This document shows, piece after piece, positions 1 to 10,540 of a DNA stretch of 10,540 nt; position 1 is the first letter of the stretch, and each line of letters starts with the position of its first letter. Origin of the DNA: Oopsacas minuta (Eukaryota; Animalia; Porifera). The translations under genes and the position numbers were made by a program. Location: the NCBI GenBank assembly GCA_024704765.1, contig JAKMXF010000165.1, positions 1 to 10,540 of the forward strand. Direction: 5' to 3'. The notes under the pieces are model-generated. The model had not been told where the DNA came from. It worked only from the letters and a program-made list of their open reading frames with translations, and made no database searches.

Positions 1-274
1 TCTGAGTCATTCCACCCAATACCATTCCTACTGCCCTGCTTCTTGTGGCGGAAGTAGCTTCTTTGACCATTATTATACGCTATAATTTGTACAATCGGGA
101 TTGATAATATACAAAATAGAAATTGGCATTCTGACTGAGAATGGTATACTAAAATTGTCTAAAACTGGTTGTTAAAATGAAATAAGAGTGGGTGTATTCC
201 ATAAGATTGAACACTGAAACTATGGTTACATTATTGTGGATTAAGTGATTAGGGCATCAATTCTTAACACCCTG
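1..274. mobile_element. Right-hand part of a non-coding Tc1/mariner-type element (probable MITE); TIR at 248-274 followed by TA (275-276)
   Basis: 248-274 ATTAGGGCATCAATTCTTAACACCCTG is the reverse complement of 10448-10475 CAGGGTGTTAAGAAATTGATGCCCTAAT apart from one A. Both ends abut TA. No recognisable coding sequence in 1-247. Confidence 0.8.
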
Positions 275-276
275 TA

Positions 277-326
277 TATTCTTTTTTGTCAAAATATCAA
301 CCGGCCAATACATATGGGTCACCCTG
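277..326 (+). mobile_element. 3' subterminal region and right TIR (301-326) of the DD37E element whose body lies at 9168-10447; TA at 327-328
   Basis: The reverse complement of 301-326 (CAGGGTGACCCATATGTATTGGCCGG) matches 9168-9193 (CAGGGTGTCCCATATGTATTGGTCGG) at 24/26. TA flanks both. Confidence 0.9.
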
Positions 327-499
327 TAGATGGCCTCCCAGCTCCCTTACGATGTTTAAGACCAACATTATGTTGTTTTTGACTTTACTCGATAAACCAT
401 TGCCACACTGACGCCAAGTTTCTTTAAAATCTGAACAACAGATAGACCAGAACTGATAAGTAATGTTTCTATCTGTAGTCTATTTCGCTGTTGATTCAT
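327..499 (-). pseudogene. N-terminal fragment of Tc1 transposase (first HTH and GRP linker), frameshifted, cut by the DD37E insertion
   Basis: Hand translation from the ATG at 499: MNQQRNRLQIETLLISSGLSVVQILKKLGVSVAMVYRVKSK / (frameshift) KQHNVGLKHRKGAGRPS. It ends at the TA (327-328) and continues in frame at 9165 (SLRLSVKRSV...). Too short for the ORF track. Confidence 0.8.
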
Positions 500-766
500 A
501 TCAAGGGATTACAAGCTAAAAATTAGAATATTTTGAATTTACAAGTTATTATTCAAGAATTGAAAGGAATGACGACGTAGTCAATAGATTCTTCATATAA
601 ATTAAACATTGAAGAATGCAATCTAAGTTGATAAATGGTCAAAATAGTTGGGAAAGCATATGTCTAACTAACTCTACATCATGTAAATGATAATGTAAAG
701 TATAATTGAAAGAAAATTGGTTCTTTAAGAATATATCGAAATTCTCAATAATTATGTTACAGACTG
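329..766 (-). mobile_element. 5' part of a Tc1 (DD34E) element: TIR at 740-766, upstream region, start of transposase; TA at 767-768
   Basis: The reverse complement of 740-766 (CAGTCTGTAACATAATTATTGAGAATT) matches 8262-8288 (CAGTCTGTAATATAATTATTGAGAATT) at 26/27. Confidence 0.9.
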
Positions 767-1969
767 TACTTAGTAAAGTATACCTTTGGAATTCTAAGTG
801 TTGTTATAGAAAAGGACAGTGAAACATTTCTATAGTTCTGCTATTCATTTCTAAATTGTCTCTACTGGATAACGATTGAAATGCTGTGTATAGAATGATA
901 ATCGTGTGTAGATGTTCTCATATTTGAAATATAGTGAAAATACTTTGTTTTGTATACCATCACAATTTTCTATGTTGAAATATGAAAATGACTAAGAAAA
1001 GTTTGGATAATTTAACATATCATTTCCAATGTATTTGACAACGGATTGAATGAAATGCTGTGATAATACAATAATCGTGTGTCCATGTTCTCGCATGTGA
1101 AATTGAGTGACAATACTTTGTTTTGTATACTATCACAATTATCTGTGCAGAAATATGAAAATGACGATGAAAAGTTTGTAATGTTCTGCTGTGCTTTTCG
1201 AAATTGTTTCGTTTGGAAATTGAGTGAAATGCTACATATAATACAATATTCATGTGAACATGTTCTCATATTCGATATTGGGTGGGATATACTTAGGAAA
1301 GTATACTTTTATAATTTTCTGTGTTGAAATATGAAAATAAGGTTGAAATGTTTGTATAGTTCAATTGTTCAATTCTAAATATTTACTATTGAAATTGAGT
1401 GAAATACTATGCATAGAAGAATATTCGTGCAAACATGTTCCCACATTTGGAATTGAGTGGCAACTATTTGTTTAGTTTAGTTTCACAATTCTGTGTGGTG
1501 AAATTTGATATAGCCTGTTAAGTCTTGGTACAGTTAAGCAACAAATTTCGAAATTTATTGTTTTGATATTGAGTAAAATGATATAAATTGAGTATAATAC
1601 CAGCGAATACTTACTACCATTTGAAATTGAGTGACACAAAATGTATAATTCACTTTCACAATTTTGTGTGTGGATATCATGTAATGGCTGTGAAATGTTT
1701 GAAGAGTCCAGCTGTTAACAAATGCTGTGTTTGTTTCGGGACTTTGTGAAATCCTTAGTACAGAGCACTACACTAGTGAATAATTGCTGAAATTTGAAAT
1801 AGTGAGACAACTAATTGTTTCGCGTAGTTTCACAATTCTGTGTGTATAAATTTGAATTCGACATGTTTGAAGAGTTCAGGTATCAACAAATGCCTTGTTT
1901 GTTTTGGAATTTGTGAAATGCTGAGTATAGAGCAATATACTAGTGAATAATTAAAGAGATTTGAAATTG
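767..1969. repeat. Diverged ~174-bp tandem satellite (about 7 units), each unit made of three ~58-bp subunits
   Basis: A GAAATG(C)T anchor recurs at 878, 1052, 1226, 1401, 1575, 1748 and 1915 (spacings 174, 174, 175, 174, 173, 167). TTGAAATTGAGTG-like motifs occur roughly every 58 bp. Confidence 0.9.
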
Positions 1970-3711
1970 GGAATACCGACAATTCGCACCTAATTTGCTT
2001 GGTTAATTGATTCCGAATATGATTTTTAGCATTGTATTATCAATTTTTGTTGTTATTTATGTACTTAAAGCCAAGAAATTTTAAAAGGTTCATATACTTT
2101 CAACGGCTACAGAGGTAATCGAGTGTTAGAATAGCATATCGTGAATATTCGACTTAGAGTGTGACTTTCAAAGCACACATAGGATACTTAGTAATACATA
2201 ACATAAATTATCGGTTGATTAGGAGTAACCTGGGTGCCCGAAAGGTGCCTAATGAGGACGCTTCGTCTCCGCAACCGCGTACCGCAAGGAAGAGTAGCTT
2301 ACTTGTATATGTTGAATTTTTGAACTATACAAGTAGTAAAGTATGGATGGCACAATCTGTAATCAAAACTTTACCCATACATTTGGAAAAAATATAAATA
2401 AAATCATTCCGGATTTATCATAATACAATTTGAAGCTGTTCTTCGATGGAAAATCTTTCTTATATTTCCCCACATTAAGCTGGCCTAACTCTTCATCATG
2501 TGCGTAGGCAGACTGCAGCCCTACAGACTGCACATGTCGCCAGATATTCTGTGTGAGGTGGATACAGTAGGCGGATCTGTTCCCACATCCTCAGGTAGGC
2601 AGTCTACGTCTTGTTGGGCAATAGCACGAACAGGCTCGGTAACAAATGACCGGTCTTCATAGGATCATCTCCTCCGCGGAGTCCATGCACCACATACACC
2701 TGGCAAAGAGGGGAGGTGCCGTCTTGGAGGTACCCATTAGGTAGCCAGATCTTGCTTCGCTGCAGCATCCCGAGGTTGTGTTGTGTTCCGAAGATGATGA
2801 ATCTGTGTACATCGTCTGCGCCAGAGTCGTAGAGTGAGAACTGTTCTCCCTTGGCTGTCTGCTGGTAGACTGCTGGTAGAGCTAGCTCTGCTAGAGTGCT
2901 AGGCTGTGCTGGAGCTGCAAATACACTAGCACGTTGGCGTTGTATCGTCCGCTTCAGGCTGTCCAGTTTGGGGAGTTTAGCAGCAGTACCCTCTGATGCT
3001 GTTTGCAAACTCGCGCCCACTATGTGGTGTGTGCTATCCTGGGACTCCCATGCTTTCCTCTTCATGCCTGCCTTCGCTTTACAACAGTCCGCTACCTGCT
3101 CGTCAGGCCCATGGGAGTGCTCATTCTTGCGCTTGACTATCACCATCCCTTTGGTATGAACTCTAGCTTTGCAGACCCCTCTTTGCTCGCACAACCAATG
3201 TGTCACATCTCCACCTCTCTTCTGCACTCCAAATAAATATCCATCCTCCGACAGCTTGTCTCCTCCTCTTTGTGACTTGATCAGCCTAAAGGTCGGCTGA
3301 TCAAGAGGTTCGCCATTAGTAGAGTTATAAAATTTCAAAGACAAAGGTATTGATTGGTAATGAGAAAACGAATCTGAGTTTGAACTAGATCATTTTATAT
3401 TTATGTCCGAGGATTGCAAATATCACAGGTGATCACATCCTGTTTACTACATCCTAAGAGTATTTCCTTCGTGTGTGTTTACTTAACACATATTATAGCA
3501 ATCTTTGGAATTTATATCATTAAATGGAATCATGGAATCATGTCATCTAAAATTAGAATTATCTATCCAATTAAGACTTTCCGTGTGCAGATATAACTAT
3601 TAGAAAATTGATTATTTATGTGTGCTTAGATTAAATTAATTAACTAATATCATATCTTATTGACCAATCAAATTAGGTACGAATTGTCGTGGTGCGAATC
3701 GTCGGTATCTG
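1970..3711 (-). mobile_element. Mutator-like element (MULE), 1742 bp, internally deleted and non-autonomous, with a 9-bp TSD TTGAAATTG (1961-1969 and 3712-3720)
   Basis: Left end is GGAATACCGACAATTCGCACCTAATTTGCTTGGTTAAT. The reverse complement of the right end is CAGATACCGACGATTCGCACC-ACGACAATTCGTACC-TAATTTGATTGGTCAAT, with one extra 15-bp subterminal repeat. The 9-bp flanking duplication is perfect, and removing the element restores a normal satellite unit. A 9-bp TSD is typical of MULEs. Confidence 0.92.
2486..3316 (-). pseudogene. FLYWCH zinc-finger + MULE transposase pseudogene (truncated, frameshifted)
   Basis: ORF 2604..3344 contains the FLYWCH-type pattern DGYLF..QK..THWLCEQRGVCKARVHT...NEHSH, then MULE-typical SLKRTIQRQR, QF.LYDSG, RFIIFGT, QVYVVHG and LFVLLPNKT. 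The DGTF motif is damaged (NG, plus compensating +1/-1 shifts masking T.KTAPPLFAQVY). There is a stop at 2604-2606, then a deletion removing the DFE...GCFF segment, then HLTQNIWRHVQSVGLQSAYAHDEEL (2560-2486) in another frame. No C-terminal catalytic E region was found. The probable native ATG is at 3316; the ORF-track start is a TTG. Confidence 0.9.
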
Positions 3712-4500
3712 TTGAAATTGTGTGACAACAATTTGTTTAGTGTACATTCACAATTCTGTGTGTGGATATTATATATTAGCTGTAAAATGTTTGAAGAGTT
3801 GAGTTATGAACAAATTCTTTGTTTGGTTTGGAACTTTTTGAAAAGCTAAGTATAGAGCACTACACTAGTGAATAATTGCTGAAATTTGAAATTGTGAGAC
3901 AACTAATTGTTTGGCGTAGTTTCACAATTATGTGTGTTTAAATTTGAATTAACTGTGGAATGTTTGAAGAGTTCAGATATTAACAAATGCCTTGTTTGTT
4001 TAGGAATTTTGTGAAATGCTGAGTATAGAGCAATATACAAGTGAATAATTGTAGAGATTTGAAATGGTGCTACAACTATTTGTTTAGTGCGCTTTCACAA
4101 TTCTGGGTGTGGATATTATATATTGGCTGTGAAATGTTTCAAGAGTTCAACTGTTAATAAATCGTTTGTTTGTCTCGCAATTTTGTGAAATGCTTAGTAT
4201 AGAGCACTACACTAGTGAATATTTGCTGACATTTGAAAGTGTATGACAACTATTTGTTTAGTGTACATTCAAATTTCTGTGTGGATATTATACATTGGAT
4301 GTAAATGTTTGAAGAGTTTAGCTATGAACAAATGCTTTGTTTAGTTTGGAATTTCGTGAAATGCTAAGTATAGAGCAATATGCTAGTGAATAATTGCAAA
4401 CATTTAAATCGGGAGACTACTATTTGTTTGGTGTATTTTCACAAGTCTGTGTGCGGATATTATATATCGGATGTGAAATGTTTGAAGAGTACAGCTGTTG
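3712..4500. repeat. Continuation of the ~174-bp satellite (about 4.5 units)
   Basis: Unit starts at about 3712, 3886, 4059, 4233 and 4404. Shared blocks are ATGTTTGAAGAG and GTATAGAGCACTACACTAGTGAATAATTG, also seen at 1621-1969. Confidence 0.92.
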
Positions 4501-4542
4501 ACAGCAGAACTCTTCAAACATTCCACAGACAATATAGAATAT
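4457..4542. repeat. Fold-back inverted repeat at the boundary between the 174-bp and 59-bp arrays
   Basis: 4472-4490 TGTGAAATGTTTGAAGAGT versus 4509-4527 ACTCTTCAAACATTCCACA is 18/19 complementary. Pairing extends imperfectly to 4457/4542. The centre GCTGT-TG-ACAGC is itself a mini-palindrome. Confidence 0.9.
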
Positions 4543-4547
4543 AGTGT

Positions 4548-7500
4548 TGACATTTAAAACCTAATAACAATACTTTGCATAGTATACTATGTAATTTGTG
4601 TGTGTTGAAATTTGAAATTGAGTGACAATAAGTCTATTCAGTGTGCTTTATCATTCATTTGGGTTAACATTTGAAATTGAGTAACAATAATTCTATTAAG
4701 TGTGGTTTAATAACTGCTTGTGTTAACATTTGAAATTGAGTGACAAATTTCCATTAAGTGTGCTTTATGCCAGTCTGGTGTTGATTTTTCAAAGTCAGTG
4801 ACAATAATTCTATTAAGTTTGCTTTAACAATTACTTGTGTTGAAATTTGAAATGAGTGACAATATGTCTATTTAGTGTGCTTTATCATATATTTGAGTTG
4901 ACATTTGAAATTGAGTGGCAATAAGTCTATTCAGTGTGCTTTATCATATATTTGTGTTGACATTTGAAATTGAGTGACAATAAGTAAATTCAGTGTGCTT
5001 TAGCATTTATTTGTGTTAACATTTGAAATTGAGTGACAATAATTCTATTAAGTGTGCTTTAATAATTGCTTGATTAAACATTTGAAATTGAGTGACAAAT
5101 TTCCATCAAGTGTGCTTTATGCCAGTCTTGTGTTGATTTTTCAAAGTTAGTGACAATAATTCTATTAAGTTTGCTTTAACAATTACTTGTGTTAACATTT
5201 GAAAATGAGTGACAATAAGTCTATTTAGTGGGCTTTATCATTTATTTGAGTTGACATTTGAAATTGAGTGGCAATAATTCTATTAAATGTGCTGTAACAA
5301 TTACTTGTGTCAACCTTTGAAATTGAGTGACAATAATTCTATTAAGTGTAGTTTATCAATCATTTGTGTTGCCAATTGAAATTGAGTGACAATAATTCTA
5401 TTAAGTCTAGTTTATCAATCATTTGTGTTGCCAATTGAAATTGAGCGACAATAATTCTATTAATTGTGCTGTAACAATTACTTGTGTCAACCTTTGAAAT
5501 TGAGTGACAATAATTCTATTAAGTGTAGTTTATCAATCATTTGTGTTGCCAATTGAAATTAAGTGACAATAAGTCCACTCAGTGTTCTTTATCATATAAT
5601 TGTGTTAACATTTGAAATTGAGTGACAATAGTTCTATTAAGTATGCTTTAACAATTGCTTGTGTTAACATTTGAAATTGAGTGACAATAATTCTATTAAG
5701 TGTACTTTATCAATCATTTGTGTTGACAATTGAAATTGAGTAACAATAAGTCTATTCAGTGTGCTTTATCATTTATTTGTGTTAACATTTGAAATTGAGT
5801 AACAATAACTCTATTAAGTGTTCTTTATCATATATTTGTGTTAACATTTGAAATTGAGTAACAATAATTCTATTAAGTTTGCTTCAACAATTACTTTTGT
5901 TAACATTTGAAATTGAGTGACAAATTTCTATTAAATGTGCTTTATCCCAGCCTTGTGTTGATGTTTCAAATTCAGTGACAATAATTCTATTAAGTTTGCT
6001 TTAACAATTCCCTCTGTTAACATTTGAAAATGAGTGACAATAAGTCTATTTAGTGTGCTTTATCATATATTTGTGTGGACATTTGAAATTGAGTGACAAT
6101 AAGTAAATTCTTTGTGCTTTAGCATCTATTTGTGTTAACATTTGAAATTGAGTGACAATAATTCTATTATGTGTGCTTTAATAATTGCTTGATTAAACAT
6201 TTGAAATTGAGTGACAAATTTCCATTAAGTGTGCTTTATGCCAGTCTTGTGTTGATTTTTCAAAGTTAGTGACAATAATTCTATTAGGTTTGCTTTAACA
6301 ATTACTTGTGTTAACATTTAAAATGAGTGAAAATAAGTCTATTTAGTGGTCTTTATCATTTATTTGAGTTGACATTTGAAATTGAGTGGCAATAATTCTA
6401 TTAAGTGTGAATTAACAATTACTTGTGTCAACATTTGAAATTGAGTGATAATAATTCTATTCAGTGTGCTTTATCATTTATTTGTGTTAACATTTGAAAT
6501 TGAGTGACAATAAGTCTATTCAGTGTGCTTTATCATTTATTTGTGTTAACATTTGAAATTGAGTGACAATAAGTCTATTCAGTGTGCTTTATCATTTATT
6601 TGTGTTAACATTTGAAATTGAGCGACAATAATTCTATTAAGTGTGCTGTAACAATTACTTGTGTTAACATTTGAAATTGAGTGACAATAATTCTATTAAG
6701 TGTGCTTTATCATATATTTCTGTTGACATTTGAAATAGAGCGACAATATTTCTATTAAGTGTGCATTAACAATTACTTGGGTCAACATTTGAAATTGAGT
6801 GAAAATAATTCTATTAAGTGTACTTTATCAATCAGTTGTGTTGACAATTGAAAATGAGTGACAATAAGTCTATTCAGTGTGGTTTCAATTTATTTGTGTT
6901 AACATTTGAAATAGAGTGACAATAATTCTATTAAGTGTACTTATCAATCATTTGTGTTGACAATTGAAATTGAGTGACAACAAGTCTATTCAGTGTTCTT
7001 TATCATATATTTGTGTTAACATTTGAAATAGAGTGACAATAATTCTATTAAGTCTACTTATCAATCATTTGTGTTGACAATTGAAATTGAGTGACAATAA
7101 GTCCATTCAGTGGTCTTTATCATATATTTGTGTTACTAATTGCAATTGAGTAAAAATATTTCTATTAAGTGTGCTTTATCATATATTTCTGTTGACATTT
7201 GAAATTGAGTGACAACAAGTCTATTCAGTGTTCTTTATCATATATTTGTGTTAACATTTGAAATAGAGTGACAATAATTCTATTAAGTGTACTTATCAAT
7301 CAGTTGTGTTGACATTTGAAATTGAGTGACAATAATTTTATTTACTTCACTTTATCAATCATTTGTGTTGACAATTGAAATTGAGTGACAATAAGTCCAT
7401 TCAGTGTTCTTTATCATATATTTGTGTTACTAATTGCAATTGAGTAACAATATTTCTATTAAGTGTGCTTTATCATATATTTCTGTTAACATTTGAAATT

Positions 7501-7668
7501 GAGTGACAATAATTCTATTAAGTGTACTTTATCAATCAGTTGTGTTGACAATTGAAATTGAGTGACAATAATTATATTTACTTCACTTTATCAATCATTT
7601 GTGTTGACAATTGAAATTGAGTGACAATAAGTCCATTCAGTGTTCTTTATCATATATTTGTGTTAACA
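4548..7668. repeat. 59-bp tandem satellite/minisatellite, about 52 units, consensus close to CATTTGAAATTGAGTGACAATAAKTCTATTMAGTGTGCTTTAWCAWTTAYTTGTGTTAA
   Basis: Unit starts at 4611, 4670, 4729 and onward. In 6481-6620 the motif shifts one base per 60-nt line, i.e. period 59. Several recurrent variant types are present. The array ends at the N. Confidence 0.97.
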
Positions 7669-7669
7669 N
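7669..7669. other. Single N: probable assembly gap/scaffold join
   Basis: It is the only ambiguous base, and the 59-bp array stops exactly here with unrelated sequence following. Confidence 0.75.
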
Positions 7670-7824
7670 AAATTTATCGAAAAAATTTGTGTGGGAAATA
7701 TTTTTTGACAACAGAATCGGATTCTACGCAAAATTCTACACAAGAATCATGAAAAATCTCAAGGACCTCGTTTTTTCGATCAATATGATTTTCTGAGAGA
7801 CCGGTGGGTTCAGCTGATCACTTA
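7670..7824. other. Unassigned non-satellite segment, possibly a relic of a non-autonomous DNA transposon
   Basis: Unrelated to the satellite. CAGAATCGGATTCTACGCAAAATT resembles internal motifs I recall from invertebrate non-autonomous DNA elements. No partner TIR or TSD is visible. Confidence 0.25.
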
Positions 7825-8261
7825 GAATTTGTTTCTATGAGAAATTGAGTGAAATGTTGTGTATAGAACAATATTCTAGGTAATATGTTCGGATATTTCA
7901 AATTCAGTGTCCATTCTTTGTATTGTATGCTTTCACAATTCTTTGTGGTGATAATTGGAAATGTCTCTAAATGTTGCGTATTTCAGCTTCTCGTTTCCAA
8001 ATTGTGTCCATTAGAAATTGAATGAAATGCTGTGTATAGAAAAACATTCTACTGAAAATGTTCTCACATTTAACTTTGAGTGAGAATATTTTATAAAGCA
8101 AACTTTCACAATTCTCAGTGTTGTAATTTGAAAATGACTGAGAAATCTTGTATAGTTCAGCTTTTCACCACCAATGTAACCGATAGGGAGTTGAGTGAAA
8201 TACTGTGTATAGTACAATATTCGTATGGACATGTTCTCATATTGGATATTGGGGAGACATG
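7825..8261. repeat. ~174-bp satellite (about 2.5 units) of the same variant type as 767-1450
   Basis: GAAAT anchors at 7851, 8024 and 8197 (173, 173). Shares GAAATGCTGTGTATAGAA and CATGTTCTCATATT with 878-1270. Confidence 0.9.
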
Positions 8262-9167
8262 CAGTCTGTAATATAATTATTGAGAATTATTCAATGAGCT
8301 AGAACAGAATCAATTTTCCTGAAATGAGTCTAATTCATGTGATTTTGGTTCAAAAAACATCACTAGTTGATAATTTATAGCAAAAGCACCAGATTCTATT
8401 ACCATCTGGCATCTGTGTGGCATCGCGGATCACAATGTGGTTTTAGAAATTAAGGGGTTATCCTTTCCCATAGAATTTCAAGCATCTTCCTTAGCTCTGA
8501 AATTGTTCTAAGAGCCAATTTTATAAGTTCTCGTTTTACCCAACTGAAAACATTTTCTATTGGGTTGATATCGGGGCTCTGACAAGGCCAAGGAAGATGA
8601 TTCGGGATGTTCTGAACAAGATATGTCTTGACAAGTTTAGAGGTGTACTTTGGGTCGTTGTCCATGACAAGACGCCATTCATTTTGGTGGAAGATTTCTG
8701 CCTGAGTTAACAAATCCCCTTCTAGAATATCAACAAACATTTGACTGTTCATGTTTTGGTGAAAATACATAGAGGAAATGTTCCCATTGAACTGAACCCC
8801 GCCCAAACATTGATCTTTGGAGAATGCTTAGTTGTCGGGACTATTCGTTTCTGGCCTGATTTTGTCCACATTTTGATCCTTCCTCTAGCAGGCCAAATCG
8901 ACATTTCATCAATAAATACTGTTTGGTACCAGGCTTTCTTGGGATACCTGTACTTCTTAGCCCATTGCTGCTTTGCAAGTCGATTTTTCTCGCTAATCAT
9001 TGGTTTATTTGTCGGTTGATTTTGTTATAGTCAAGATCTTTCATCGCGCGCCAGACTGTTTCGTGTGAGGGTTTAACAGGTGCAAGTGATGCCAAAGTAC
9101 GAAAGAAAGATAGGGCTTACGTCTGGTCTGTTGAGTAACGCTTCTCTTAACAGATAATCTTAGGCTA
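8262..9167 (-). mobile_element. 3' part of the Tc1 (DD34E) element with TIR at 8262-8288; interrupted at the TA 9166-9167 by the DD37E element
   Basis: The TIR pairs with 740-766. The flanking dinucleotide is TG (8260-8261), interpreted as a mutated TA. Reconstructed length is about 1.34 kb. Confidence 0.9.
8367..9167 (-). pseudogene. Tc1 transposase (DD34E) pseudogene: second HTH and DDE domain, several frameshifts and stops
   Basis: SLRLSVKRSVTQQTRRKPYLS / RTLASLAPVKPSHETVWRAMKDLDY / ORF 8749..9000 (WYQTVFIDE, KINVWAGFS) / ORF 8450..8806 (MDNDPKY...WPCQSPDINPIENVF, 34 residues between D and E) / MPHRCQMVIESGAFAINY. Confidence 0.93.
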
Positions 9168-10447
9168 CAGGGTGTCCCATATGTATTGGTCGGTACACTC
9201 ATTTTTTATTCAATCTTAATTGTAAAGTAAGCCATTACGAAATGTTATTGTGTATTTATATGTATTCAAGTTACAATTCTTAGAACATTTTCTACCAATT
9301 AGTTTTAACTTTACGCATATTTTAAGTTGATCTCCTATTAGACTTCGTTTAGCTCCGAATTGTTAACTATGGATGTCAGAGATTATGGTGTATCGATTCG
9401 TTCTCGGGCAATTGGGGAGTGGGATAACTCAGAAAGTTGTTTCGCAGAGTTTAAGCGTCAGCCTAAGATCAGTGAGACGTGGTGGCATGCACAAACCTCG
9501 GCAATCTCTCGAATCTACACCAAAATCTGGTCGTAAAAAGACAGTCTCTCGTGTAGCTAAAATTGTCATTTCCAAATCATTAGGAAACGAAGACAGTCAA
9601 CAAGAAAAATTGCTTCTAAGTTAGCCAATAAAGGAATATCCATGTCTATATCAACAGTACATCGCTATCTAAAGACTGATTTAAAGGTAAAATCGTACAA
9701 AGGGCTAAAAATACCCAGACTTACCCAAAAAATGAAAGAAAATCGCATAAAATTCAGTCAGGGAACTATTAATTGGACTGCTGAAGCTTGGAAAAAGGTA
9801 CTGTAGAGTGATGAATCGCCGTTTGAACTCTTCTCTCTCCCAAATCGCCAAAATGATCGAGTATGGTCGAAATCCACCACAAAGGTTGTGCCATGCCTCG
9901 TGTTAAATTTCCCCCTATAATTCAAGTCTGGGGTATGATTTCCTTTCAATTTGTTTCCGAATTGCATATAATACCGAAAGGACAGATGGTTAAGGAGCTT
10001 ATTATAGGGATAGTATATTAGCAGATACCTGTATGGCTGCGATCAAACATAGGCTAAGACAGGTACAATATTGGAAAAGTCAATGCTCCAAAACATGTTC
10101 AAAAATTTTTTTATGCAGGATGGAGCACCTGCTCACACAACTAAACTAACTCAACAGTGGTGTGCAGAGAATCTCCCGAACTTTTGGCGTAAAGAGGATT
10201 GGCAGGGGAATTCTCCAGATTTAAATCCCATTGAATATGTTTGGGGATATTTGAAAGATAATATGACTAACATGAAAGAAGTGAGCACTCTAATGGGGCT
10301 TGAAAAAATCTGAAAAAAGCATGAAGATCAATTCTTAATGATTTTCTCGAAAATTTAGTCAGTGGTATGCCCAATCGTATTAGACGTGTTCTCCAATGTA
10401 ATGGAGAGTATATAAATAAATAAATATATTGTATATAATGAAGTATA
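9168..10447 (+). mobile_element. IS630-Tc1-mariner element of DD37E type; left TIR at 9168-9193, interrupted in its 3' subterminal region at TA 10446-10447
   Basis: TA-CAGGGTG terminus. Its partner TIR is at 301-326. Reconstructed length is about 1.33 kb. Confidence 0.9.
9369..10423 (+). pseudogene. DD37E transposase pseudogene with multiple frameshifts and stops
   Basis: Reconstructed by hand: MDVRDYGVSIRSRAIG / SGITQKVV..PKSGRKK / RRQSTRKIASKL...STVHRYLK...WKKVL*SDESPFELF.LPNRQNDRVW / IQVWGMIS / FMQDGAPAH...WQGNSPDLNPIEYVW / MPNRIRRVLQCNGEYINK*. D codons are at 9810 and 10119 and the E codon at 10233, giving 37 residues between the second D and E. Confidence 0.92.
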
Positions 10448-10540
10448 CAGGGTGTTAAGAAATTGATGCCCTAATTATATTTGAGTAACAGTTTGAAATC
10501 AGCGGTATAGAAAGTGGTGATCACTTTCCAATATAACCGC
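10448..10540. mobile_element. Left-hand part of the probable MITE; TIR at 10448-10475
   Basis: TA-CAGGGTGTTAAGAAATTGATGCCCTAAT pairs with 248-274. The element would be 367 bp if the window ends are directly contiguous. Confidence 0.8.

Follow-up and report, generated by a model that had tools for sequence, protein, structure and literature searches.

A probably mis-ordered scaffold behind an apparent circular permutation in the glass sponge Oopsacas minuta

The window analyzed here, a stretch of 10,540 bp, is not an excerpt but the complete scaffold C165 (G000:C165) of the Oopsacas minuta assembly, which comprises 365 scaffolds and 61.46 Mb. It consists of contig A (1-7668) and contig B (7670-10540), with one N between them. 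The initial annotation held that the right edge of the window continues into its left edge. We found that this apparent circular permutation is probably a mis-ordered scaffold, that is, a scaffolding artefact over real, ordinary biology. The latter is routine, with three Tc1/mariner elements inserted one into another within a block of satellite DNA. Judging from the sequence comparisons described below, the real local order is likely to be C348-X-B-978 bp-A, in which C348 is a 183-kb scaffold, X a 2.83-kb transposon and the 978 bp an unassembled part of the innermost inserted element. The features of the window, in the order in which the scaffold presents them, are the following.

1-277, minus strand: innermost DD37E Tc1/mariner element, which is young; nt 1074-1351 of ~1351 (right end), from copy comparison; start of contig A
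278-326, plus strand: middle DD37E element (decayed), right end with its TIR, which pairs with 9168-9193; TA at 327-328
327-766, minus strand: outer Tc1 (DD34E) element, right part, with the N-terminal HTH portion of a decayed transposase; TIR at 740-766, TA at 767-768
767-1976, plus strand: 174-176-bp satellite, ~7 units, from repeat analysis
1977-3689, minus strand: insertion in the satellite of a transposon whose TIRs are 31 bp long, from inverted repeats, Pfam and copies
3712-4503, plus strand: 174-bp satellite, 4.6 units, with a short palindrome (4457-4542) at its end, from repeat analysis
4594-7668, plus strand: 59-bp satellite, ~52 units; contig A ends within it
7669, no strand: single N, scaffold join of A and B, with unrelated sequence on either side
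7670-7806, plus strand: last 137 bp of transposon X with its right TIR; GGTT at 7807-7810; contig B begins here
7807-8261, plus strand: 2.6 units of the 174-bp satellite, separating X from the Tc1 nest, from satellite anchors
8262-9167, minus strand: outer Tc1 (DD34E) element, left part, with the DDE portion of the decayed transposase; TIR at 8262-8288
9168-10445, plus strand: middle DD37E element, left 1.28 kb, containing stops and frameshifts; D-37-E spacing in the frame at 10071-10313
10446-10540, minus strand: innermost DD37E element, nt 1-95 (left end); last feature of contig B and of the scaffold

The nested transposons and their satellite surroundings

The nesting itself, as proposed in the initial annotation, was corroborated at each level. 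The TIRs of the outer Tc1 (8262-8288 and 740-766) pair with 96% identity, and in five paralogs without the interruption (L002-L006) the equivalent of 9167 runs straight into that of 327, which confirms the insertion site of the middle element; in L003 the two matches have 2 nt in common, which fits a single shared TA. The transposase had been said to read through this site, and on the minus strand the frame indeed stops at 327 (...HRKGAGRPS) and is picked up at 9165 (SLRLSVKRSV), with the transposase of paralog L002 being unbroken across the split point (...HRKGAGRPSSLRLSVKRSV...). The split transposase was checked piecewise against this uninterrupted paralog. The element has the TA site, the TIRs, the HTH and DDE domains (HTH_Tnp_Tc3_2 and DDE_3 in a Pfam analysis of the paralog ORFs) and the spacing of 34 residues between the second D and the E (paralog L005) that define a Tc1 (DD34E) element, although the window copy is decayed and its left flanking dinucleotide reads TG where TA is expected.

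The TIRs that had been assigned to the middle element were likewise recovered (9165-9194 and 300-329, 93% identity), and in three uninterrupted paralogs (L012-L014) 10449 runs directly into 275, which confirms the insertion site of the innermost element. A spacing of 37 residues between the second D and the E was found for the middle element, both in the window frame 10071-10313 and in L012, and for the innermost element in an intact ORF (L010). Together with the TA site, the TIRs and the DDE transposase this makes both elements DD37E, an assignment that is based on spacing and structure.

The innermost pair of TIRs had been annotated as that of a MITE. The pair stands (10446-10475 and 248-277, inside the middle element), but the label was rejected, as other copies measure ~1,351 bp and contain a transposase frame, which in the copies on C199 and C44 is open over 358 aa and includes HTH_Tnp_Tc3_2 and DDE_3. 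Based on these copies with an intact frame, the innermost element appears to be an autonomous DD37E element, of which the interior is unassembled in the window. Its right end (1-277) is 94-99% identical to at least nine other copies in the assembly. With 94-100% identity to its paralogs, ~99% for several copies, it is the youngest of the nest; the outer elements, at 88-94%, are older. The nest does reveal that the compact genome of O. minuta harbours a young DD37E family whose transposase frames are intact and that may still be active.

The satellite connects the two halves of the nest in the same way. The anchors at 7851, 8024 and 8197 are followed by those at 878 and 1052, and the 174-bp register is kept from 8197 to 878 when one TA is removed, in line with what had been noted earlier. 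The proposed empty site was found as well, since the outer Tc1 flanks (8240-8261 and 767-790) match an uninterrupted satellite unit at 1270-1310. Each of the nest junctions occurs only once in the assembly. The transposon at 1977-3689 has at least 20 copies in the assembly at 82-94% identity and carries a 246-aa FLYWCH zinc-finger frame (2604-3344, minus strand; PF04500, E=9e-12). The 59-bp array has a sole close relative in the assembly, at C332:134817-136935 (80-87%), all other matches being at most 72%.

The scaffold ends and the join at the N

The claim that the right edge runs directly into the left edge did not hold. The full-length innermost element is ~1,351 bp, of which the window contains nt 1-95 and nt 1074-1351 only, so that 978 bp are absent between 10540 and 1. 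The contig ends neither abut nor overlap, and a comparison of the start and the end of the scaffold revealed no terminal overlap of 11 nt or more. In at least nine other copies the equivalents of window positions 10540 and 1 lie ~950-985 bp apart, and no short form of the element that would let 10540 abut 1 was found, all two-ended copies having these 950-985 bp.

The precise positions of the ends are informative. Bases 1-99 are present exactly in another copy of the innermost element (L007) and base 100 is a private variant, unlike all nine copies compared; similarly, the final 99 bases (10442-10540) recur without any difference in the copies on C325 and C314. Both contig ends are thus formed by one k-mer that is common to other repeat copies. 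The assembly was made with SPAdes, using k 21-99 (PMC10280926), and ends that coincide with exactly shared 99-mers are the signature of the largest k of the assembler. Both outer ends are places where the assembler, at k=99, broke off within a dispersed repeat.

At the internal join the scaffold is not continuous either. Homology to X begins exactly at 7670 and positions 7560-7668 are 59-bp satellite, and the N at 7669 is a real discontinuity between unrelated sequences. A search for the left end or TIR of X across the window found neither, so that a small gap at the N is not supported. The four-base target duplication of X made it possible to look for the partner of this truncated copy elsewhere. 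Among the 51 X ends in the assembly, only the one at C348:51013-51016 (minus strand) has a GGTT flank that matches window positions 7807-7810, where around 0.2 such matches are expected by chance among X ends. The X ends in C348 and in B are of the same subfamily (~99%) and their orientations agree. When the two flanks were aligned separately to satellite units, the C348 flank proved satellite-like (local score 86 versus 38 +/- 5.7 for shuffles) and stopped at the same four satellite-unit bases where the window flank starts. Given the GGTT, the subfamily and the satellite phase, B continues leftward into ordinary chromosome. The window thus does not have the same neighbour on both sides: with the left end of its X in C348 it exits to linear sequence, and the C348 flank leaves the satellite for non-repeat sequence within ~250 bp of X.

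In C348 the left end of X (310 bp) adjoins another single N (C348:50705), beyond which the sequence lacks the right end of X; this low-coordinate side contains no satellite and is unique in the assembly. Within the 40-70 kb section of C348 that was fetched, no other Ns were found. Including this one, four other single-N joins cut repeats without a counterpart beyond the N (the remaining three being C338:136153, C41:2560 and C332:134816), and consequently a single N in this assembly carries no information on adjacency. SSPACE and GapFiller can leave a single n at joins.

Origin of the join and competing readings

The following scenario would account for the scaffold as it stands. A block of 174-bp and 59-bp satellite acquired several DNA transposons, with a Tc1 (DD34E) entering one satellite unit, a DD37E entering the Tc1 and a younger, autonomous DD37E entering this first DD37E. 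Since this youngest element is high-copy and near-identical, a de Bruijn assembler with a largest k of 99 could presumably not traverse it. The locus would then have been broken, with B stopping 95 bp into the youngest element and A starting 277 bp before its other end, the true order being B, 978 unassembled bases and A, and with B attached upstream, via the 2.8-kb X, to the high-coordinate side of C348. The scaffolder would subsequently have set A ahead of B with a single N. The assembly was based on Illumina paired-end, Nextera mate-pair and PacBio data, with a genome-wide coverage of 186x, and SPAdes was followed by SSPACE and then by Pilon and GapFiller (PMC10280926). An earlier paper on the same Illumina data mentions only adapter removal by Cutadapt and does not mention mate-pair sorting (PMC4520895). 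A candidate cause of the A-to-B join may be found in short-insert pairs that contaminate the Nextera mate-pair library, as such pairs, when taken in mate-pair orientation, would keep both strands, swap the order and produce a negative gap.

Some observations speak against an artefact. SSPACE did link 7668 to 7670, for which it needs at least 5 linking read pairs at -k 5, and contaminant pairs that reach across the missing 978 bp would need a span of at least ~1.28 kb, a considerable length for fragments of this type. Moreover, C165 remained a 10.5-kb orphan that was not placed in a large scaffold, as a closed cycle would give likewise, and the assembly would not reveal a tandem duplication of recent date if one of its breakpoints lay inside X. 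A tandem macro-repeat would have a unit of at least 14 kb (the remainder of X, B, the innermost element, A and more 59-bp satellite), present in at least two near-identical head-to-tail copies that were collapsed, so that both the B-to-A and the A-to-B links would exist in the genome. Such a repeat is consistent with the orphan state of C165, with the location of all four contig ends within repeats and with the right end of A being linked to the left end of B in the strand orientation that a cycle needs; satellite blocks are, in addition, prone to unequal exchange. We nevertheless consider it rather unlikely, considering that the left neighbour of the X in B is the 183-kb C348, in a flank without fork or N, and that A does not end in X sequence, which leaves no assembled A-to-X junction. 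It would also require breakpoints inside X and inside the 59-bp satellite, which share no homology, it must postdate the insertion of an element that is ~99% identical to several other copies, and none of the nest junctions has a second, diverged copy in the assembly. An extrachromosomal circle of satellite and transposons, sequenced along with the chromosomes and assembled in permuted form, has the apparent closure of the map as its only argument and is extremely improbable: the terminal overlap expected of a closed assembly path is absent, neither join is continuous (978 bp missing at the one, an N at the other), the other end of the X copy in B lies in a chromosomal scaffold, and on either side the scaffold stops at a k-mer break point that lies in a dispersed repeat. 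Taking both together, it is quite unlikely that the A-to-B join is real and reflects a very recent tandem macro-repeat, or a circle that arose from one, with a size of 14 kb or more and built of two related satellites and five transposons with a breakpoint inside X.

A version of the artefact reading in which the right end of A is placed as well would add to the wrong order that C165 was left out of the single-N gap in C348, or that A continues into the 59-bp array behind the N at C332:134816. With the former, the order would be the high side of C348, X, B, the innermost element, A, the rest of the 59-bp satellite and the low side of C348, which agrees with the 310 bp of X, the N and the missing right end found there. 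It would, however, hide at least 14 kb behind one N, next to a low side that is unique and without satellite. The C332 array starts after an N and matches that of A (80-82%) as A matches itself at shifted offsets (81-83%), but this similarity is the same at every offset, by which continuity of the arrays is not demonstrable from it. Both placements are very unlikely as they stand. A gene that runs into the N of C332 was also considered as resuming on the low side of C348, and this failed, its homology stopping at the N; the 'gene' at this N belongs to a multi-copy PCM1_C-like family, of which it represents a piece of 710 bp.

Of the three readings put forward initially, the swapped order of contigs across the N is thus the one that found support, from the ends at k=99, from the break in sequence at the N and from the partner of X in C348, and nothing supports the macro-repeat or the circle. 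The circular permutation is probably not a real feature.

Implications and relation to known systems

The main value of the analysis is one of caution: a single N in this public assembly does not imply adjacency. At least the join in C165 and that at C348:50705 conflict with the transposon evidence, and three more single-N joins cut repeats abruptly. Gene order, synteny and structural claims that span such Ns need checking against the PacBio reads.

The scaffold resembles mis-ordered, negative-gap mate-pair joins in that two repeat-bounded contigs are connected by one N, with the strands right and the order swapped, and in that the O. minuta pipeline used Nextera mate pairs, SSPACE and GapFiller (PMC10280926); for the C165 join, however, the exact cause is inferred. 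The nest compares well with nested Tc1/mariner elements in satellite or heterochromatic DNA, considering the TA sites, the TIRs, the DDE transposases, the order of ages and the paralog-confirmed insertion sites, and shows nothing unusual apart from the host being a glass sponge. With collapsed higher-order or macro-satellite repeats it shares the combination of satellite and transposons, the small orphan scaffold and the self-closing map, whereas C165 leads into a linear chromosome (C348), lacks terminal overlap and has no second copy of a junction.

Nested Tc1/mariner elements in the satellite

The terminal inverted repeats (TIRs) of three nested Tc1/mariner elements were found in the sequence at the positions where the initial annotation had placed them.

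Transposon features in the window
8262-8288 with 740-766: TIR pair of the outer element
9165-9194 with 300-329: TIR pair of the middle element
10446-10475 with 248-277: TIR pair of the innermost element
1977-3689: FLYWCH-bearing element of 1.7 kb (TIRs of 31 bp, FLYWCH zinc-finger frame)
7670-7806: right part of transposon X, its final 137 bp

All three nested families carry the HTH_Tnp_Tc3_2 and DDE_3 domains (Pfam), and the second D is followed by the E at a spacing of 34 (outer element) or 37 (middle element), on which basis the labels Tc1 and DD37E hold. Split features were compared piecewise with uninterrupted paralogs. In five such copies of the outer element (L002-L006) the equivalent of 9167 runs into 327 without a break, and in three copies of the middle element (L012-L014) 10449 runs equally unbroken into 275. 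Where the two pieces meet on such a copy they share 2 nt in L003 and 4 nt, or two TA repeats, in both L012 and L013, as a TA target without duplication would give. The nest is supported much more strongly by these paralogs than by the inverted repeats alone.

When the pieces are translated separately, the Tc1 frame proves to be indeed split: on the minus strand ...HRKGAGRPS ends at 327 and SLRLSVKRSV resumes at 9165, and the uninterrupted paralog L002 reads ...HRKGAGRPSSLRLSVKRSV... across the split. The empty site that had been proposed is likewise present, as the sequences on either side of the outer element match an intact satellite unit (1270-1310), and the 174-bp step is kept across the nest after removal of one TA (anchors 7851, 8024 and 8197, then 878 and 1052). 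Left of the outer Tc1, positions 8260-8261 read TG and the right side has TA; the TG has presumably arisen by point mutation of one of the two target-site copies.

The innermost element had been labeled a MITE, which is contradicted by its other copies: these measure ~1,351 bp and some hold a 358-aa open frame. Compared with a full copy (L010:428-1780 on C199, ~1,351 bp), the window has only nt 1-95 and 1074-1351. The family is represented by at least 13 loci in the assembly, with 94-100% identity over the matched end segments, and at least two copies contain open 358-aa transposase frames; those on scaffolds C199 and C44 also show the D-37-E spacing. Judged from these sequences, the innermost element is a young autonomous DD37E, and its Tc1/mariner family may be active in this glass sponge.

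Scaffold ends and the single N

In at least nine other copies of the innermost element, ~950-985 bp separate the equivalents of window positions 10540 and 1, so that, contrary to what had been assumed, 10540 does not run directly into 1; 978 bases are missing between them, and no overlap between the two ends of the scaffold (C165) was found. Bases 1-99 match another copy exactly, base 100 is private to the window copy (it differs from 9/9 copies compared), and the last 99 bases (10442-10540) are matched exactly by the C325 and C314 copies, so each end consists of one shared 99-mer. The largest k used in the published assembly was also 99 (PMC10280926). The ends of C165 are thus de Bruijn contig break points at a repeat (k = 99), and neither physical ends nor a closure.

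C165 (1-10540) constitutes the window in full, within an assembly of 61,460,524 bases in 365 scaffolds. Its only N, at 7669, divides it into contig A (1-7668) and contig B (7670-10540). To the left of this N lies a 59-bp satellite, and homology to X, a transposon of 2.83 kb with inverted ends of 127-167 bp, begins exactly at 7670 in an alignment with four other copies. X has 51 ends in the assembly, in two subfamilies; no left end was found within the window. The N marks a true discontinuity, hiding at least 2.7 kb, the remainder of X, if this copy is complete.

Comparable Ns stand at four other sites: at C348:50705 the N comes after the initial 310 bp of an X, at C41:2560 before the final 210 bp of one, at C338:136153 after the innermost element (nt 1-344), of which nothing lies beyond the N, and at C332:134816 between a piece of a multi-copy gene family (94% identical) and a 59-bp satellite array. 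A single N in this assembly is therefore no evidence of adjacency, and these joins in the public assembly merit long-read checking. At all four sites a repeat is cut abruptly, without a counterpart across the N.

Chromosomal order and origin of the join

The 4-bp target duplication of X is identical in seven of the nine complete copies and differs by one base in the other two. The window copy runs into GGTT on its right, and a genome search for X ends with GGTT in front gave one exact match, at C348:51013-51016 (minus strand), where ~0.2 would be expected by chance among the 50 other X ends. The flank of that X is satellite-like (local alignment score to window units 86 vs 38 +/- 5.7 for shuffles) and ends on the same four satellite-unit bases where the window flank begins, the pattern that the two borders of a single insertion should show. 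The two X ends fall in one subfamily, to whose members they are ~99% identical, and their orientations agree. On C348, a scaffold of 183 kb, satellite extends no farther than ~250 bp from X; the low side is free of satellite and unique, and between 40 and 70 kb there is no N other than 50705. The join at 50705 is at odds with the pairing of this X left end to C165.

Beyond contig A, the closest 59-bp array (80-87%) is found only at C332:134817-136935, after the N at C332:134816; other matches reach at most 72%. Identity between the C332 and A arrays is 80-82%, and that of the A array to itself at shifted offsets 81-83%; the two could be one array. In window 3712-7668, the core of the 59-bp satellite (TTGAAATTGAGTGACAA...) is common to the 174-bp satellite, from part of which it looks to be derived, and the switch between the two runs through a short palindrome (4457-4542).

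Since GGTT, satellite phase, subfamily and orientation agree, the local chromosome order runs from the C348 high side (minus strand) through X and B to the 978 missing bp of the innermost element, and from there to A and more 59-bp satellite. A scaffold with swapped contig order, which the initial annotation had set against a biological repeat or circle, is thus borne out, one outer side having been traced to linear sequence (C348).

An assembly artefact best explains the apparent circular permutation. SSPACE leaves a single n when it estimates a gap of zero or less and finds no overlap, and GapFiller can shorten a gap that it does not close to one N. Nextera mate-pair libraries are known to be contaminated with short-insert pairs that face inward; taken as mate pairs, these would place contigs on the same strand, in swapped order and with a strongly negative gap. 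Swapped order on the same strand with a negative gap is the pattern of the C165 join, but the contaminating pairs would need to bridge ~1.28 kb or more, a long distance for fragments of this kind, and for this reason we only infer the mechanism. The published pipeline used SSPACE (-x 0 -k 5 -n 15), then Pilon and GapFiller (PMC10280926); an earlier account of the same Illumina data mentions adapter removal with Cutadapt as the sole step (PMC4520895).

A tandem duplication of very recent date, broken within X on one side and within the 59-bp satellite on the other, could not be seen in the assembly and would also account for the A-B join and the orphan status of C165; we consider it unlikely. 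A free extrachromosomal circle has the closed map as its sole point in favour and the C348 link against it, and is highly improbable. With the artefact set aside, the anatomy in the initial annotation was real and accurately read, the MITE label and the direct continuity being the parts that fell; what remains is ordinary biology, three nested Tc1/mariner elements, a FLYWCH-bearing transposon and X, all in a satellite block.

Other repeat families and the affinity of X

The FLYWCH-element family has at least 20 copies (82-94%), and some loci are apparently larger, with internal inverted duplications (e.g. ~C222:936504-940924). The gene family cut at C332:134816 is multi-copy, with a single frame of ~600 aa (C332:134101-134815, C41:65666-67624, C10); the 11 loci that were found all match positions 1-60 of Pfam PCM1_C, with 14 matches altogether, and the C332 copy is truncated exactly at the N.

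An example of X is L043:938-3773 (C222:959938-962773), with TIRs starting CACGGG and 4-bp target duplications. Its 503-aa frame had no match in Pfam or PDB sequences; the nearest protein-language-model clusters include RAG1/Transib-like proteins, which may serve as a lead. The target duplication of Transib is 5 bp, and in this respect X, with 4 bp, is unlike Transib and closer to Chapaev-type elements.
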